NCBI GenBank assembly: GCA_946965045.2
Contig: OX337228.1
Location: forward strand, 1,364,001-1,428,000
DNA length: 64,000 nt
Direction: 5' to 3'
Source: Epithemia pelagica
Lineage: Eukaryota > Protista > Bacillariophyta
Shown here: positions 1 through 6,950 of the stretch, in pieces
How positions within the stretch are numbered: position 1 is the stretch's first letter
Layout: every line of letters starts with the position of its first letter
Made by a program: the position numbers and the translations under genes
The notes under the pieces: model-generated
Told to the model about the DNA's origin: nothing
The model's input: only the letters and a program-made list of their open reading frames with translations
Databases searched by the model: none

Positions 1-784
1 GGGAAGCCACTGCCGCAGAAGCCGACTTTTTCTCGAGATATTCAATGGTAAAGGGACAGTCGGGTCGCTGTGCCTCATTCTTCGTTGTCGCAGCGTCGGA
101 TGCACCAAATTTTTGTTTCAAGAGGGGAGCCAACTGTTGCGATTTCCATTGCTCAAAATCTCCTTCCAAATCGTCGTCGTCATTTCCCAAGGCCAAGGGC
201 AACAGTCGTTCGCCTTTGCAAACGTCAGCCAAGGCCTGGTCAATAAATTTGCCCATGGCATTGTAATGCTCGTATTGTTTGTTTCCCAAACCAAAGACAC
301 AAAATTCCAATGCAAGTTTCGTTGGTGGTTCTTGTTTGGATTCTTCTGGTTCATTTTCTTTTTCCGTTTGTTGTTGTTGTTGTTCTTGCAATTGGGAAAT
401 GAGCTGAGACGCATTGTCCGTTGGTTCGCCTTCGCCATAGGTGGCGACGAGCCAAATGCTGGGCGATTGAATCTCTTGTGGCGACGGCAAATCTTCGACA
501 TCAATGACTTGACACTGTACCAGGTTCACCAATTCCCGTTGCAACTGTCGCGCAAAGGACTCTGCTGTCCCGGTTTGACTGGCATAGTAGACAAAGAGCT
601 GTGGTGCCGATGAGTCGCTCGGTTGGTCGTCATCCTTGTTGGGATCAGTCGAACGAACAGCCTTGTTGTGGTTCTTATTCGTGTTGCTCTGGAACAACAC
701 ATACGCCAAAGAAGACGCCAACAAGACGGTGGAAACACCCGTTCCTACCAACACCCACAACAACGACGAGTCTTCTCCAAGCAT
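1..784 (-). CDS. POR: NADPH-cytochrome P450 reductase (diflavin reductase), 5' part; runs off the left edge
   Basis: Open minus frame from ATG 784 to the edge, absent from the ORF track because no stop falls in the window. It reads MLGEDSSLLWVLVGTGVSTVLLASSLAYVLF (membrane anchor), then FMN-domain motifs LFVYYASQTGTAESFA, VATYGEGEPTDNA, FCVFGLGNKQYEHYNAMG and LGNDDDDLEGDFEQW. Confidence 0.9.
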   Translation of the reverse strand, partial: MLGEDSSLLWVLVGTGVSTVLLASSLAYVLFQSNTNKNHNKAVRSTDPNKDDDQPSDSSAPQLFVYYASQTGTAESFARQLQRELVNLVQCQVIDVEDLPSPQEIQSPSIWLVATYGEGEPTDNASQLISQLQEQQQQQTEKENEPEESKQEPPTKLALEFCVFGLGNKQYEHYNAMGKFIDQALADVCKGERLLPLALGNDDDDLEGDFEQWKSQQLAPLLKQKFGASDAATTKNEAQRPDCPFTIEYLEKKSASAAVAS

Positions 785-1572
785 TGTCGTTCTTGATTCA
801 AGATCTAAGGGTGATACTAGTAATGGACTCTTTGTCCTCGATACAGCCAGACTTTGCAGAGAGGATCATAGCGAAATAGAGATAGAACCACGCAAGACAA
901 AGAGCGAACGATGACCACGTCACGGAATGCATCGATCGCGCTTCTTCTCGATTGAGCGGCCTATATGCGACGGCTCATTCGCTTTTGTAGGACGCGGTCG
1001 CATCACAATGGGCATCTCATCTCCACAATAATGACATTCGACATTCGACGCTCTAACCGTAGTAAGGTTAGAAGATAGAGACAACCTCTCTCGAGCCTCT
1101 TTTTAGAGTCGTAGACCAGGATGTCATTCGTCTCCAGAACGAGCTCCCGCAGGGGTTGTACAGGGGTATGTATGATGGAACGTTGCGCGAACACGCAACT
1201 CGTACTAATTACCTACTCCTATCGCCTTGCCATTTTCATAGAGCTTTCCTATTGTCAGGATGCTATAGATGCAAGACAGACGGATGATTTTCTGATCATT
1301 GTGCCAGGGTTCCGAACCATATTGTTCAGACCATGCAAATTATAGTGTTGTCACAGAACTCGTATATTTCCCCTCATGATGTATCCTTCGAATCATATCA
1401 CGATAAGAAGCCTCCCTTTACCAACGTAGTCCATACCACTTCGTGCCTTAGAGTGGTGATCATGATGAGGGTATGTTGGTTCTGTCGCGTGTCTGGTTCA
1501 TCCTCCGTTGCCTCGTTCTCTCTCTCTGTCTCTCTTCGTCCATCATCGTGCCGTGCTTCTTGGATCCCCAAT

Positions 1573-1622
1573 GGGTAGGTATACCGAATGGGCATCCGGG
1601 TAGGTATACCGAATGGGCATCC
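1573..1622. repeat. Exact 25-bp tandem duplication (GGGTAGGTATACCGAATGGGCATCC x2)
   Basis: Read directly: 1573-1597 equals 1598-1622. Confidence 0.95.
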
Positions 1623-1972
1623 ATTTTGGAGTATTGCCTTCCCCTCCGATGCAAAAGCTTTGTGTCTGAAATGTCACTGGGTCTTGGGATCTAATGACCA
1701 CATCACAATCGCTCCTTTCCTCTCCACATTCCACGGTCGGTCATTGTCGTTGGTCATCGGACCTTGGGACTTGGGACAATGGCTTGTAGCACATCTTCAT
1801 TATCATTCCCGGTTAGGGCAATACAATAATAGATGACAAAAAACTTCGAATACGCCCAACAAGAATCAAATAGGTCCGAAATCCGGAGCCGCAATCCCGC
1901 AACAAATGCCACTGCTTCCAAAATCACTTGCCTCTCATTTGAGAACAAGAGACGACGAAGAAGAAAGGCACA

Positions 1973-2519
1973 ATGAAACTTGGTTGGCTTGTAGCGTTCA
2001 TTTGCTTGGTTGTAGCCTCCGCTGACGGGGTGGCAAAAGACTGTCCCGATGCCGAGCACACGTGTGGTCCTTGTTGGGGTAGGTGATATATGCGCACACA
2101 AAATAAGAATAGGGTGTCGTGGATGGTATAGACACAATTCATTCCGGAATGGTGGTGGTTGGGTCGTCGGTTGTGACGACTGGCCATGCCGCCAAACAAG
2201 ACGCGCGTCTTCTCTCCTCCTAACACAAAAGAATAACATAAGTAGCTCGAGCGATTTCGAAACATTGGTTCTCACAAAAAGTCTCTGGCTGTTTCTTGTT
2301 CGTTACCAGGTGAAGCGGACGAGTACGATCCGGATACTGGTACGTCTTTCTTCTTCGTAGATGGAACGAATCTCGTGCTACTGGACACACCATCTGACGT
2401 ATCTCTTGTTGTTGTTGTTGTGTTGTTGTTGTTGTGCAGGTCGCATCGAACCCAAGGGCCCAACACCAGCTCCCACTCACAAGGTGACATATGTCAACCC
2501 ATGGGGTAGTGTACCGTAA
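1973..2519 (+). CDS. Small secreted Cys-rich peptide gene A; exons 1973-2078, 2310-2339, 2440-2519
   Basis: Spliced product MKLGWLVAFICLVVASADGVAKDCPDAEHTCGPCWG-EADEYDPDTG-RIEPKGPTPAPTHKVTYVNPWGSVP*. It has a signal peptide, GTAGGT and GTACGT donors, CAG acceptors and two phase-1 introns. It resembles the N-terminus of the vWA gene at 5054-6950. Expression is unverified. Confidence 0.55.
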
Positions 2520-2767
2520 GCAACTTTTCACCGCACACAAGGACAGAATCGTTGGGGTGATGGGCACTCTGTTTTCTTCCTTCTCCTCCCCAAGAGAGAA
2601 GAGAGAGATGACGTGACTCATCAAGGAGGAGGAGTGTCCCATCTTTAAGTCTCCAGCCGAAACTGTCCACAATCCATATGTTCCATCATTTATCACTATC
2701 AAAATCAATATCGTAGAAGCATTTAAAAACCGTGTTCGAGCCTCCTGGTTCGGGCTGATCCGGATAC
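2327..2767 (+). repeat. Duplicated segment copy 1 (shared with copy 2 over 2335-2758), flanked by 11-bp direct repeat GATCCGGATAC
   Basis: Matches 3957-4377 apart from about 4 substitutions and one 3-bp indel. GATCCGGATAC occurs at 2327-2337 and 2757-2767. Confidence 0.92.
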
Positions 2768-3673
2768 CACGGATCCCTAACCACTACTCATCCAGTCTAT
2801 TGAAGAGGATGAGAACAAACATTCATTACACAAAGACACACACACACACATTCTCGAGAGTCATGGTGCGTGGTTTCGAGAATCTGCCATTGTGTGTACA
2901 GTCAGTGCAGCCGGGGATGGCCACCTGTGTATAGATACGTACGGGTGATCACCAAGATGAGTGTGGATTTTTTCGAGTTTCTCATGATAACTTTCACCGA
3001 CCTTGGAATCTATAGTATCCTAATGGTCGAACAACAATTAGGAGAATGGTATACATGGTTTGTTTTACTTGAGCATTCTCCTAGAGGTAGAGGAAAGGAG
3101 GGAACATTCTCCCTAGTCCAACCAGTGTCCTCTTTCTTACATGATTGCTCCTTGCACTGGTAGTCCACTATCGTTGTTGCTCAAACACAGGGACCAAATA
3201 GCAACCGACTCTGCAATCGCCCAAAGTGGCATCCTCGGTACTCCTGATAACTTCGACCGGCCATGGAATATCGTAAATGGTATTACAGTTTATAATGATA
3301 TTTATGTTTGTTTTACTTGAGCGACCCGCTTGCTGATTCCTCACGATCGGGCAGCGATTTCCCCAGTCATTTTACGACCTGATCGTATCACCAAAAGGAC
3401 ATTATTGCTCTATAGGCGTAAGTAATTGGACTGCTGTAGTCATTGGTGGAATGTCTATGTCTTACCAGTATCCCAGTCATCATAGTTCCCAATAGACCCC
3501 CAAGATACATATTATTTATGCCCTGAATCTGGGTGTTACGCAGAGAGATCTCGTTCCTTCGCCGCGCGAGAGGTTCGTCTTTTTGTTGTCAACGTTGAGC
3601 ACACAATTGGTCCTCTTGCCACATTCGATTTGATTTGTCTTTTTTCTCTTCATAACACACCTCTACCTCTAGA

Positions 3674-4141
3674 ATGATGAACATGAAGATCTTTGTAGCT
3701 ACTTTGTTGGCAGCCTTGATGCCCGTTGCCGTCTTGGGTGACGGTGTAAGTATCCGTACGTGATGGTTTCGGAAGGAGATGGGTGGGTAACAGGAAGCTT
3801 CTCTTCTGACTCGGTTCCTTTTGCTTGATTTCTTTTTGTTTTGCGTTGCTCTTGCGTATCTTGCCTCGTCTCGACACATTGTAACGATTGATCGGCAATC
3901 CTCAATGGCGGCGGCATTACAGATGAATGTATTCACGTAGTGTGTGGAGACAGTTGTACTGGTACGTCTTTCTTCTTCGTAGATGGAACGAATCTCGTCC
4001 TACTGGACACACCATCTGACGTATCTCTTGTTGTTGTTGTTGTGTTGTTGTTGTTGTGCAGGTCGCATCGAACCCAAGGGCCCAACACCAGCTCCCACTC
4101 ACAAGGTGACATATGTCAACCCATGGGGTAGTATACCGTAA
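3674..4141 (+). CDS. Small secreted Cys-rich peptide gene B; exons 3674-3743, 3923-3961, 4062-4141
   Basis: Spliced product MMNMKIFVATLLAALMPVAVLGD-DECIHVVCGDSCTG-RIEPKGPTPAPTHKVTYVNPWGSIP*. It has a signal peptide, and its 39-nt exon 2 with phase-1 introns matches the vWA gene. The first donor is ambiguous (GT at 3744 versus GTAAGT at 3746). Confidence 0.55.
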
Positions 4142-4377
4142 GCAACTTTTCACCGCACACAAGGACAGAATCGTTGGGGTGATGGGCACTCTGTTTTCTT
4201 CCTTCTCCTCCCCAAGAGAGAAGAGAGAGATGACGTGACTCACCAAGGAGGAGTGTCCCATCTTTAAGTCTCCAGCCGAAACTGTCCACAATCCATATGT
4301 TCCATCATTTATCATTATCAAAATCAATATCGTAGAAGCATTTAAAAACCGTGTTCGAGCCTCCTGGTTCGGGCTGA
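3957..4377 (+). repeat. Duplicated segment copy 2 (putative donor: intron 2, last exon and 3' flank of gene B)
   Basis: Near-identical to 2335-2758; no flanking direct repeat. Confidence 0.92.
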
Positions 4378-5053
4378 GGAATGAAGTTAAATTATGGTTT
4401 CCTGAAACTCGTAAGCTATTTGTGTATCGAGACTCTGGTGGACCACAAGGTATTGCACCAAGAGTATCTGTAAAGGGTATCCCACAACTGGTATACGATC
4501 AGCCTCCTTGTGTGGGGTCGGTCTTGAGAGAAATGAGGTTTTGTTTTCGTGGGAGCACTCATGAGACTGGCAGTAGTGGAGGAACTCTCGTAACGCCCTT
4601 GTAACGCCATTTGCTGGTGTCTAGGAACCCCCTGTCAATGCATACTTGGCTGCCACACAGAAATCAATGTGTTCAACTACATGTTCTCTCCATTCGACAT
4701 ACTTCGTCTTGTAGTAGTTACTGGTCGATTATTGGGTGAAGGCATTTGTGTTCGCCCTCTTGAAACATGAATGGGAGTCTCGGATGTTACGGTGATCTGA
4801 CCATAGTGAAAATTTCGTCACGGGACCAGCAGACAACGGCTAGGAGTAGGTAGTACTCCGAACGACCAACCCTCAGCTATGCTGGGCTCAATGACCTACC
4901 ATTACCTCAACAGTACGTGTCTTGTTCAGCAATAATGTTATGACAATGCAATAATACTAAAATATGTAAGTTATGTTGGGTATCTGTTGTGTGTGTTTTC
5001 GATAGTGGTTTTGGTTTGATGGTTCTCCACAGAGTTGCCACGACAACCGCAGT

Positions 5054-6950
5054 TTAATAGTGCATCGTTTCCACAAAAGTCGAAATGATAATGTTGTCAA
5101 TGAACATGAAAGAATTTCCTGGCGTGCTATCGGCGTGAATACGGAATAACATGTTCACGTTGTTATCGGGAACTTTGTACCACTTTTCCAAGTGACCTTC
5201 AATAGCGTGGTTAAAATGGACAGAAATATGGTAGGAATGCTCGACCCAGCTGTCGCCACCATCAACGGAATAGTCCAAATGAAAGTGCTCACCGTAGTCA
5301 AACCAGTTATAGACCGCGTAACTAAACGTGACTCGGGCAAAAGTACTGCCCATGACATCGACGGGAGGCGAGAGCATGTATTGGTCGTTGGCAGGATTAT
5401 TGTCTCCTTCCGTCAATGTGTCATCAACGAGAATGACACACCAGTTACTTGCGTCGTCATCGTGGGGACAGCTGTAGTTGAACTTGCCATTCCCAATCAA
5501 TTTCTTTCCGCCAGTACTGCCAACAAATTCCCAATTCGAAGTGCCGTCCTCAAATGTGTCAACGACCACTGGTGTCCACGAGCCTTCTTTATAGGAATCC
5601 CCAGAACCACAACGAGCCTTCTCGAGGAGGATTTCGACGGATTCTTCAGCTGCCAAGGCCCCATAGCCCTCCAAAACAACCGTATCGCCTGAAGCAATTT
5701 CTTCCATCAAGGTCATGTTCACGCTTCCCGTTTCAATAACCACGGGAAGAACGGCAATGTGCGCATCTTGAGCGTTGCGCGACTGTCCAACGGCATAAGC
5801 ATGATGCTTGGCATTGTCCTTGTTCCTTTCCTCGAAATCATCACCGATGGTAGAAGTTCCATCAGCGACAACAACGATGGCTCGATCATTTTCGGAATCC
5901 TTCAAGGTCTCGTAACAGGATCTAATGGCATCTCCTGTATTGGTGTATCCTCCCTTGAAAGGAATAGTGCTCAAGCTTCCAGTAGCAGCTGTGGCGTCAG
6001 TCAAGTTTGACACAATTTCCGATTCATCGGAGAAGACAACGATAGAAAAGTGTAGATCAGGTGTCGTTGCCTCGTCCAAAGCTGTTATGAATTTCTCGGC
6101 ATAGTGAAGCATACTGGCAAAGTTGTCACAGCACGTATCCTCTCCGTTATAGGACGGATCAGTGGAATATTTGGCACAACTGCATCCATAACAATCGTAT
6201 GTTTGGTCGGTTGAACAAATGGATCCTGACATGTCCAACGCCACACAAACGTCCAATTTTCGATCGCAGCTTTTTTCGGTGGGAGCACCGGTCGGAACGC
6301 TGGTAGGAGCACTGGTAGGGGCGCTGGTCGGCGAAGGTTCTGGAACGTGACCCCAGGGATTGATGTATTCCTTGGTGGGTGGTTGGGTAGGGGCATTTTT
6401 TTTATCGCAATCATCAATACATTTGCGGCCTAGTCGTAGTAAAAGTATGACAGATTTGGGGATAGATATCAGATTGAACGTGGAGCAGTCGAACGCAGTG
6501 AGTGAGGAGTTTCCAAGAACAGTGCTGAGAATGTCCAGTTTCGATTCAAACAAAGATAATGAACTTCATCTCAAGACAAGGACAACGAGAGGAACACACG
6601 TACCGGTGCAAGTACTACTACCGCACACCTCCCATGGACATGCTGTATTTGTGAGGTTTCAGAATGTTATCATTCGAGCGAAAAGCGTCCGATAGGATTA
6701 TCAACAAAACAGCAACAACCAGATCACCAACAACAGCAACAAGAAAGAAAACAAAAGTTAGAGAACACCAAAACAGTGGAAAACAGAAGTTAGAGAACAC
6801 CAAAACAATGCCCACCCCCATGCCCTCTCTCGTGCACCTCTCAGCCACTCGTCGCGCACCTTTGGATCCAACTCCATCTCCTCGAGCCAGTGGCATCCAA
6901 ACAGCCACTAGCGACCAACCAGCAACGGCAAACTTCATCTTCTTGATCAT
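5054..6950 (-). CDS. Secreted von Willebrand factor A domain protein with PTS mucin-like linker and C-terminal beta-sandwich; exons 6860-6950, 6604-6642, 5054-6429
   Basis: Signal peptide MIKKMKFAVAGWSLVAVWMPLARG, Cys-rich ACPWEVCGSSTCTGRKCIDDC and PTSAPTSAPT repeats. MIDAS residues are intact (LDMSGS, GGYTNTG, VVADG). The C-terminal domain reads DTFEDG...LSPPVD...DYSVDGGDSW. Both introns are GT-AG and preserve frame. Confidence 0.85.
6747..6807. repeat. 32-bp-period tandem duplication inside intron 1 of the vWA gene
   Basis: GAAAACA(A/G)AAGTTAGAGAACACCAAAACA at 6747 and 6779. Confidence 0.85.

Follow-up and report, generated by a model that had tools for sequence, protein, structure and literature searches.

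We describe a locus of the diatom Epithemia pelagica at which a small gene, B, and a large gene encoding a von Willebrand factor A (vWA) domain, C, share an old N-terminal head, while the neighbouring gene A is a recent chimera and B was the donor in two recent DNA-level events. We consider this explanation of the locus probable. All positions, unless another contig is named, are those of the window, which is the whole stretch of 64,000 nucleotides that was analysed (contig OX337228.1, positions 1,364,001 to 1,428,000 of the forward strand). A preliminary description of this DNA had proposed a secreted family with the three members A, B and C; the homology of B and C stands, while the membership of A does not.

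Gene models and exon anatomy

The three genes were rebuilt from the window, and the models first proposed for them held: every intron is closed by GT-AG, lies in phase 1 and splits a glycine codon. Gene A (plus strand, 71 codons) begins with an exon (1973-2078) that encodes a predicted signal peptide and a cluster of three cysteines and ends in a phase-1 donor, as judged from its translation, splice sites and hydrophobic core; it continues with exon 2 (2310-2339), whose last bases and donor site are in their present form derived from an insertion, and with exon 3 (2440-2519). Gene B (plus strand, 62 codons) consists of a signal peptide exon (3674-3743), recognized by translation and hydrophobic core, a 39-nt phase 1-1 cysteine micro-exon (3923-3961) with the pattern C-x4-C-G-x2-C-T-G, and a last exon (4062-4141) that holds a PT linker, the motif Y-V-N-P-W-G-S-I-P and the stop codon. 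Gene C (minus strand, 501 codons) adjoins B tail to tail and follows the same plan, with a signal peptide exon (6950-6860) recognized in the same way and a micro-exon (6642-6604) that is also 39 nt long and in phase 1-1, as had been claimed, and that reads C-x4-C-G-x3-C-T-G. Its exon 3 (6429-5054) encodes the remainder of the head, a PTS region, a vWA domain and a beta-rich domain, and holds two more cysteines, a PT linker, the motif Y-I-N-P-W-G-H-V-P (6367-6341) and a short PTS stretch. The sole predicted protein already recorded at the locus (P0001) begins within this exon.

The first exons of all three genes have hydrophobic cores resembling signal peptides. The best 10-residue Kyte-Doolittle window scores 3.4 in A, 2.8 in B and 2.0 in C, compared with 1.0 +/- 1.0 in random ATG reading frames of the window, in agreement with the signal peptides that had been assigned to them. 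A and B each have three cysteines in their mature part.

The pattern Y[VI]NPWG is present in A, B and C as had been reported, with three matches in the window and none in 100 shuffles, and these three sites are its only occurrences in the whole 60.5-Mb genome. Two looser NPWG matches were found elsewhere in the genome, neither of them with a matching context. Searching the genome for the pattern C-P...C-G...C-x-G followed by GT gave 50 matches against 29 in controls. A wider head family was rejected on this basis: 0 of the 10 other in-frame candidates examined, a number that leaves out A, two paralogues of A and C, had a signal peptide or a PT context. One of the ten is an ShK-like motif. Apart from a recent copy on contig 18, the genome holds no further carrier of the B-type head.

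The head shared by B and C

The heads of B and C agree in exon plan and in the pattern of their cysteines, and both carry the NPWG motif. The similarity of their second exons was equalled in 19 of 5000 composition-preserving shuffles and that of the head part of their third exons in 1 of 5000. Of the 16 conserved residues with degenerate codons, 11 are written with a different codon in the two genes, and no alignment is possible between the introns of B and those of C. Because the synonymous sites at conserved residues have mostly changed, the head module is old and constrained, and the pattern points to an old divergence under purifying selection. B is thus homologous along its whole length to the N-terminal module of C, and the shuffle tests and codon changes bear out the description of B as a head-only gene that shares this module with a vWA gene. 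We looked for vWA relics near B and found none. B could have belonged to a longer gene until recently.

Origin of gene A

The NPWG ending of A has a different origin. A 419-bp insertion (2338-2756, plus strand) was copied from B (donor 3957-4377) and contains intron 2, the NPWG exon that is now exon 3 of A, and 240 bp of 3' flank. It is 99% identical to its donor: about 421 nt contain four substitutions and a single 3-nt indel. The differences are evenly distributed across coding and non-coding positions, and those in coding sequence are non-synonymous. An 11-bp target-site duplication (2327-2337 on the left and 2757-2767 on the right) was found by comparison with contig 18, where positions 587535-587545 match both edges of the insertion. 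The copy of A on contig 18 is therefore an empty site, without the 419 bp, and the paralogue of A on contig 3 also does without them. In the contig 18 copy the stop codon that A had before the insertion (2778-2780, plus strand) is still used, and closes a head-only reading frame of 48 codons. The claim that the NPWG motif had been conserved independently in A and B is contradicted by a copy of this similarity that takes intron and flank with it and is missing at the empty site; the identity between A and B is due to duplication of DNA, and A is a recent chimera whose NPWG exon was taken from B.

The native part of A points to a different lineage. Its cysteine cluster resembles those of C and B at chance level (2532 and 3716 of 5000 shuffles, respectively, were as good), and the clusters of the three genes have only C-G...C-x-G at a phase-1 intron in common. 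Together with the copied exon, this result removes A as an independent third member. Exon 1 of A matches the contig 18 copy at every position (100% identity), and it has 86% identity with the head of a contig 3 gene in which the A-like head is accompanied by a PTS region and by a choice-of-anchor-A (CAA) domain (TIGR04215, E 6.6e-21; PF20597, E 4e-20). The CAA (pAdhesive_15) domain is absent from A, which stops after 71 codons. A is accordingly the 5' fragment, with signal peptide and a distinct cysteine cluster, of a CAA/Trailin-like lineage whose full-length member is on contig 3. Between these two paralogues the intron (83%) is as similar as the exon (86%), so that A is without sign of selection.

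The front end of B on contig 18

A second, dispersed duplication has its donor segment at 684-4121, in the pieces 684-2337, 2757-3454 and 3531-4121. This segment comprises A and the 5' three-quarters of B and is 97-98% identical to contig 18, positions 585911-595199; a source for the 76-bp filler at 3455-3530 was not found on contig 18. The 5' part of B differs from the contig 18 gene by nine substitutions in 591 nt, in coding and non-coding positions alike, and the edges of the copied segment are sharp. On contig 18 the left flank is an ATG reading frame of 48 codons plus 1 nt with a signal-peptide-like start, and the right flank supplies 2 nt and a Cys-rich domain in frame with it. Because the flanks join into one reading frame, contig 18 is the recipient, and the copy landed within the coding exon of a gene for a secreted, Cys-rich protein. 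Given the same agreement of frame, the event made a new chimeric gene, for which B supplied the promoter, the signal peptide and the micro-exon. The Cys-rich domain had no homologues by word search or in Pfam. A truncated tandem array adjoins the duplicated block on contig 18, in further support of contig 18 as the recipient.

The last six codons of B exon 3 fall outside the copied segment. This tail still matches the motif of C, which also speaks for the copying from B to contig 18: in the opposite direction the match would have to be due to chance, with a probability of about 1e-6 by a codon-frequency estimate. We rejected the possibility that it is a leftover of the 3' end of the contig 18 gene, as their similarity amounts to a 13-nt word (K-V-T-Y). 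Gene conversion between old paralogous regions was also rejected, given the sharp edges and the lack of residual similarity in the flanks.

Gene C and related matrix proteins

The vWA domain that had been assigned to C (about 6256-5612) was confirmed, with 41.2 bits to Pfam VWA PF00092 (cut-off 23.8) and 35.1 bits to PF13519 (VWA_2; cut-off 27). Its MIDAS is complete, with D-M-S-G-S after the first strand, then T-N-T-G-D-A, and A-D-G closing strand 4, and the alignment shows little or no variation at these positions. In the structure model, residues 58-272 show a Rossmann-like alternation of strand and helix with pLDDT mostly 70-90, and the head is predicted to be disordered. The beta-rich C-terminal domain (about 5440-5057), a candidate beta-sandwich of the cleaved-adhesin or MAM-like kind, has no Pfam match; it is strand-rich in a low-confidence part of the model (pLDDT 25-69), and the language-model clusters closest to it carry the name cleaved adhesin (score 0.93), which serves as a lead only. 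Scanning metagenomes with C retrieved only one distant relative, a transcript-like contig of the PT-vWA type that is 27% identical and lacks the head, and the NPWG motif was not found in the paralogues of C.

With its signal peptide, small cysteine head, PT/PTS linker, MIDAS-vWA domain and beta-rich C-terminal domain, C is probably a secreted extracellular-matrix or adhesion glycoprotein of a kind known from diatoms. The vWA-like Ca11384 of Craspedostauros australis is one of the PTS-rich modular proteins of adhesive trails and matrix in raphid diatoms, and in the trail proteins of this species PTS-rich, CAA and vWA-like modules are put together in combinations that are not conserved over their full length between species (bioRxiv 10.1101/2023.03.06.531300). 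C resembles raphid trail proteins in its modular build and in having a signal peptide, a PTS linker, Cys-rich pieces and a vWA-like domain; it is unlike those of C. australis in that its PTS stretch is short and that it is known from the gene alone. Its head, with the 39-nt cysteine micro-exon and NPWG, and its beta-rich C-terminal domain are not described in that work (bioRxiv 10.1101/2023.03.06.531300). The contig 3 paralogue of A is similar to the Trailins, choice-of-anchor-A trail proteins of diatoms (PF20597/TIGR04215), with A itself representing the 5' cassette of the lineage.

The phase-1 boundaries, and the appearance of one module in otherwise unrelated secreted proteins, recall the rule of Patthy, by which phase 1-1 modules have been shuffled among the extracellular proteins of animals. 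The events described here differ in that they stand at 1-3% divergence, that promoter and signal peptide moved too, and that one copy was inserted in a coding exon, not an intron. A functional analogy, and only that, can be drawn with mucins and von Willebrand factor, in which cysteine-rich multimerisation ends lie beside an O-glycosylated PTS region, as the Cys-rich terminal piece flanks the PTS region here; sequence and fold are unrelated, and the head packs 3-5 cysteines into about 20-30 residues that are predicted to be disordered.

Alternative explanations

It is possible, though we doubt it, that A and B are functionless fragments left by partial duplications in a rearrangement-prone region, and that only C, the CAA gene of contig 3 and the chimera of contig 18 are real genes. 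A is indeed a head-only piece whose exon is conserved no better than its intron, the even spread of differences and the non-synonymous character of the coding ones hold for both the A-B and the B-contig 18 pair, the lone recorded protein starts inside exon 3 of C, and relatives of the head were not found in the rest of the genome. B itself argues otherwise: its frame is still open, its four splice sites are canonical, and all its cysteines and the NPWG motif are in place even though its introns and most of its synonymous sites have diverged from C past recognition, and the genome has no carrier of its head other than the young contig 18 copy.

At the other extreme, the functional family of three first envisaged, in which A and B would be free Cys/NPWG peptides that act beside the adhesin C, whether as decoys, as cross-linkers or as assembly tags, seems to us improbable. 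The common motif and exon plan are real, the homology of B and C is old and constrained, and mature A and B match in their number of cysteines; however, A is joined to the others through a copy that extends over intron and flank and has diverged by about 1%, its native head resembles theirs at no more than chance level, and the paralogues of C are without the motif. Nothing direct speaks for an assembly artefact, in which the similarity of contigs 1 and 18 and the insertion in A would come from mis-joined or collapsed haplotypes, beyond the 97-99% similarity of the copies. The junctions are clean and flanked by the 11-bp duplication, the empty site on contig 18 reconstructs in frame, and the contig 1 and contig 18 copies differ by substitutions, by the insertion of a transposon that has inverted ends, and by a 5.6-kb segment, so that we regard an artefact as very improbable.

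Proposed history and significance

Under the explanation that we prefer, with an old B-C head and B as donor, about 3.4 kb carrying A together with the promoter, signal peptide, micro-exon and linker of B was copied into a coding exon on contig 18, giving a chimeric gene with the head of B. Later, the 419-bp copy of B, with intron 2, the last exon and the flank on the 3' side, was inserted into exon 2 of A, which thereby acquired its NPWG ending. The modules are flanked by introns of equal phase, with the B head now on the gene with the Cys-rich domain and the B tail on A. As the module boundaries are all phase-1 introns within glycine codons, recombination at intron boundaries would keep the frame.

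We put the chance that B is expressed, as a secreted peptide of about 40 residues, at about even. The number of cysteines is odd in B (three) and in the head of C (five), so that intermolecular disulfides are possible, at low confidence; with similarly low confidence, and from cysteine counts alone, B could through such bonds compete with the assembly of C-type proteins or cap it. A more speculative proposal, which we hold to be rather unlikely, is that B, a head-only gene that is long-lived and expressed, serves C-type matrix proteins as a free partner or as a chain terminator and is at the same time a portable cassette of promoter, signal peptide and micro-exon. If this were true, the B cassette would repeatedly seed secreted proteins and be a standing exon-shuffling donor in the evolution of diatom adhesive proteins.

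The adhesive and matrix proteins of diatoms are known as mosaics whose full length is not conserved from one species to another. The locus presents a route by which such mosaics can arise, still legible at 1-3% divergence: a single head cassette with phase-1 boundaries gave its 3' exon to a neighbour and its promoter, signal peptide and micro-exon, in frame, to another chromosome. It supplies defined junctions for the study of gene birth and, in B, a candidate for a small secreted peptide built like the head of a vWA matrix protein.

Gene models and the shared motif

The gene models rebuilt from the window place two tiny, putative secreted-peptide genes on the forward strand, A (exons 1973-2078, 2310-2339 and 2440-2519) and B (3674-3743, 3923-3961 and 4062-4141), beside a vWA adhesin-type gene on the reverse strand, C (6950-6860, 6642-6604 and 6429-5054). 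Every intron is GT-AG and of phase 1, a glycine codon being split each time, and the second exon is 39 nt long in B and in C alike. The first exons of all three genes encode hydrophobic, signal-peptide-like cores that lie well above those of the random ATG ORFs of the window. The motif Y[VI]NPWG has three occurrences in the window, and 100 shuffles produced none; a pattern search of the 60.5-Mb genome found it nowhere outside these three sites, and related context was absent at both of two looser NPWG-type matches. The signal peptides, phase-1 introns, 39-nt exons, motif and vWA domain reported in the preliminary description were thus verified. Intron 2 of A and of B also contains a (GTT)n microsatellite (2404-2435 and 4026-4057), and similar runs are dispersed across many contigs.

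The shared head of B and C

In composition-preserving shuffles the observed score between B and C was reached 19 times in 5000 for exon 2 and once in 5000 for the head part of exon 3, and the two genes have identical exon plans and phases, which upholds the proposal that they share an N-terminal head module. Their introns cannot be aligned and, where identical residues have degenerate codons, the codon differs in 11 of 16 cases. The similarity of the heads and the common exon plan, set against these introns and changed codons, argue that the head has been kept by purifying selection across a divergence that saturates silent sites. Apart from a recent copy on contig 18, B is the sole carrier of its head type in the genome, and a pattern search across the genome gave no evidence of a wider head family. 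One C paralogue (41% identity) has a similar Cys cluster and lacks NPWG; other paralogues bear different heads.

In the C protein the signal peptide is followed by a head with five Cys, a PT linker that carries the motif and a short PTS stretch, and the rest consists of a MIDAS-bearing vWA domain and a strand-rich C-terminal domain. Its description as a vWA/MIDAS protein is borne out by exon 3, which exceeds the curated cut-off of Pfam VWA, and by the MIDAS residues visible in the translation. The structure model has a mean pLDDT of 56.7, with 70-90 in the vWA part, a disordered head and a weak C-terminal part. For this last part, where the model is weak and Pfam gave no match, the nearest language-model clusters are named cleaved adhesin (score 0.93), a link that we take as a lead only. 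Relatives outside this genome are few, distant and without the head. The closest vWA paralogue (57% identity; locus L023:1498-3210, contig 4, 553183-554895, reverse strand) has a larger, quite different Cys-rich head and an in-frame TAG separating two long ORFs, which could mark either a disrupted gene or a missed intron. An R-G-D tripeptide in the region of C where the signal peptide is predicted to be cleaved (6879-6887, reverse strand) is probably fortuitous.

Origin of gene A

Alignment of both regions confines the identity of A and B to 2335-2758 in A and 3957-4377 in B. The differences within this block are four substitutions and a 3-nt indel; the intron has one of them, the exon one (a V/I change) and the 3' flank three. 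Upstream of the block the two genes are unrelated. Contig 18 matches the window at 684-2337 and 2757-3454 with 97-98% identity, its copy of A has no counterpart of 2338-2756, and at this gap 11 bp of its sequence fit both sides. Because of this empty site and the 11 bp matching either side, we conclude from the alignments that A acquired a 419-bp copy of intron 2, the last exon and the flank of B, with an 11-bp target duplication, and A can no longer be counted as an independent third member of the family. The pre-insertion end of A is a stop at 2778-2780, giving a 48-codon head-only ORF that is retained in the contig 18 copy. A Cys cluster was said to be common to all three genes; that of A resembles those of B or C no more than shuffled sequence does.

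A paralogue of A on contig 3 is 78% identical from the promoter through exon 1 and intron 1 to the start of exon 2; its frame runs on through a PT-rich region to additional domains. An ORF downstream matches the choice-of-anchor A domain (TIGR04215, E 6.6e-21; PF20597, E 4e-20), the defining domain of Trailins, the diatom adhesive-trail proteins (bioRxiv 10.1101/2023.03.06.531300). The model of this Trailin-like gene is incomplete (loci L045:122-1993 and L050:7773-8306; contig 3, about 1097770-1100570, reverse strand); its parts are a signal peptide, a Cys head, the PT-rich region, an unknown Cys-containing region and the choice-of-anchor A domain. Identity between A and this paralogue is equal in exon (86%) and intron (83%), a comparison that gives no sign of selection on A.

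The contig 18 chimera and the direction of copying

Window 3531-4121, which runs from the promoter of B through its first two exons and both introns to the motif Asn in exon 3, is 98.5% identical to contig 18, 594610-595199, with sharp edges. In the chimeric gene (locus L033:2137-3522; contig 18, 595136-596521) the frame leads on into a pair of Cys-rich units of 226 residues each, which form a perfect tandem repeat of 678 nt. As these units matched no Pfam family and had neither a paralogue within the genome nor a homologue by word search, they are classed on present evidence as an orphan secreted domain.

The whole block occupies 585911-595199 of contig 18. To its left, an ORF that opens with ATG and a signal-peptide-like segment runs for 48 codons and one base to the block edge; to its right, two bases precede the Cys-rich domain, and the flanks share one frame. 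We therefore conclude that the block entered a coding exon of a secreted Cys-rich gene that already existed, with contig 1, which holds the window, as the donor. The chance of such an arrangement of flanks was estimated at about 0.003 (in frame, open for 48 codons and with a hydrophobic start, using frequencies from a survey of ORFs in the window). Transfer from contig 1 also agrees with the six B codons past the copied segment, which still fit the C motif, a fit that copying from contig 18 to contig 1 would leave to a coincidence estimated at about 1e-6. It agrees as well with the local tandem array that the block borders, where the adjoining unit is truncated. This array of 310-320-bp units (locus L033:924-1630) adjoins the copied B promoter on the upstream side, and its final unit is cut precisely at the block edge. 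In the stub of the interrupted gene (locus L048:2766-3023; contig 18, 585766-586023) the old first 48 codons now read on into the inserted block. Later changes on contig 18 comprise a ~770-bp inverted-end element, a 5.6-kb segment in place of 76 bp and the tandem duplication within the chimeric gene. The element (587602-588368, in L048) has imperfect terminal inverted repeats of about 30 bp and no counterpart in the window at 2823, and looks like a MITE-type transposon.

Interpretation

These comparisons show the head, at the level of sequence, as a module bounded by phase-1 introns, with two recent DNA-level transfers from B, both in frame. Whether B, as predicted from its gene model, is a real small secreted peptide gene we judge to be evenly balanced. 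The cysteine counts are odd, three in B and five in the C head, which suggests intermolecular disulfides; through such bonds B would, on a tentative reading, cap or compete with C-type assembly.
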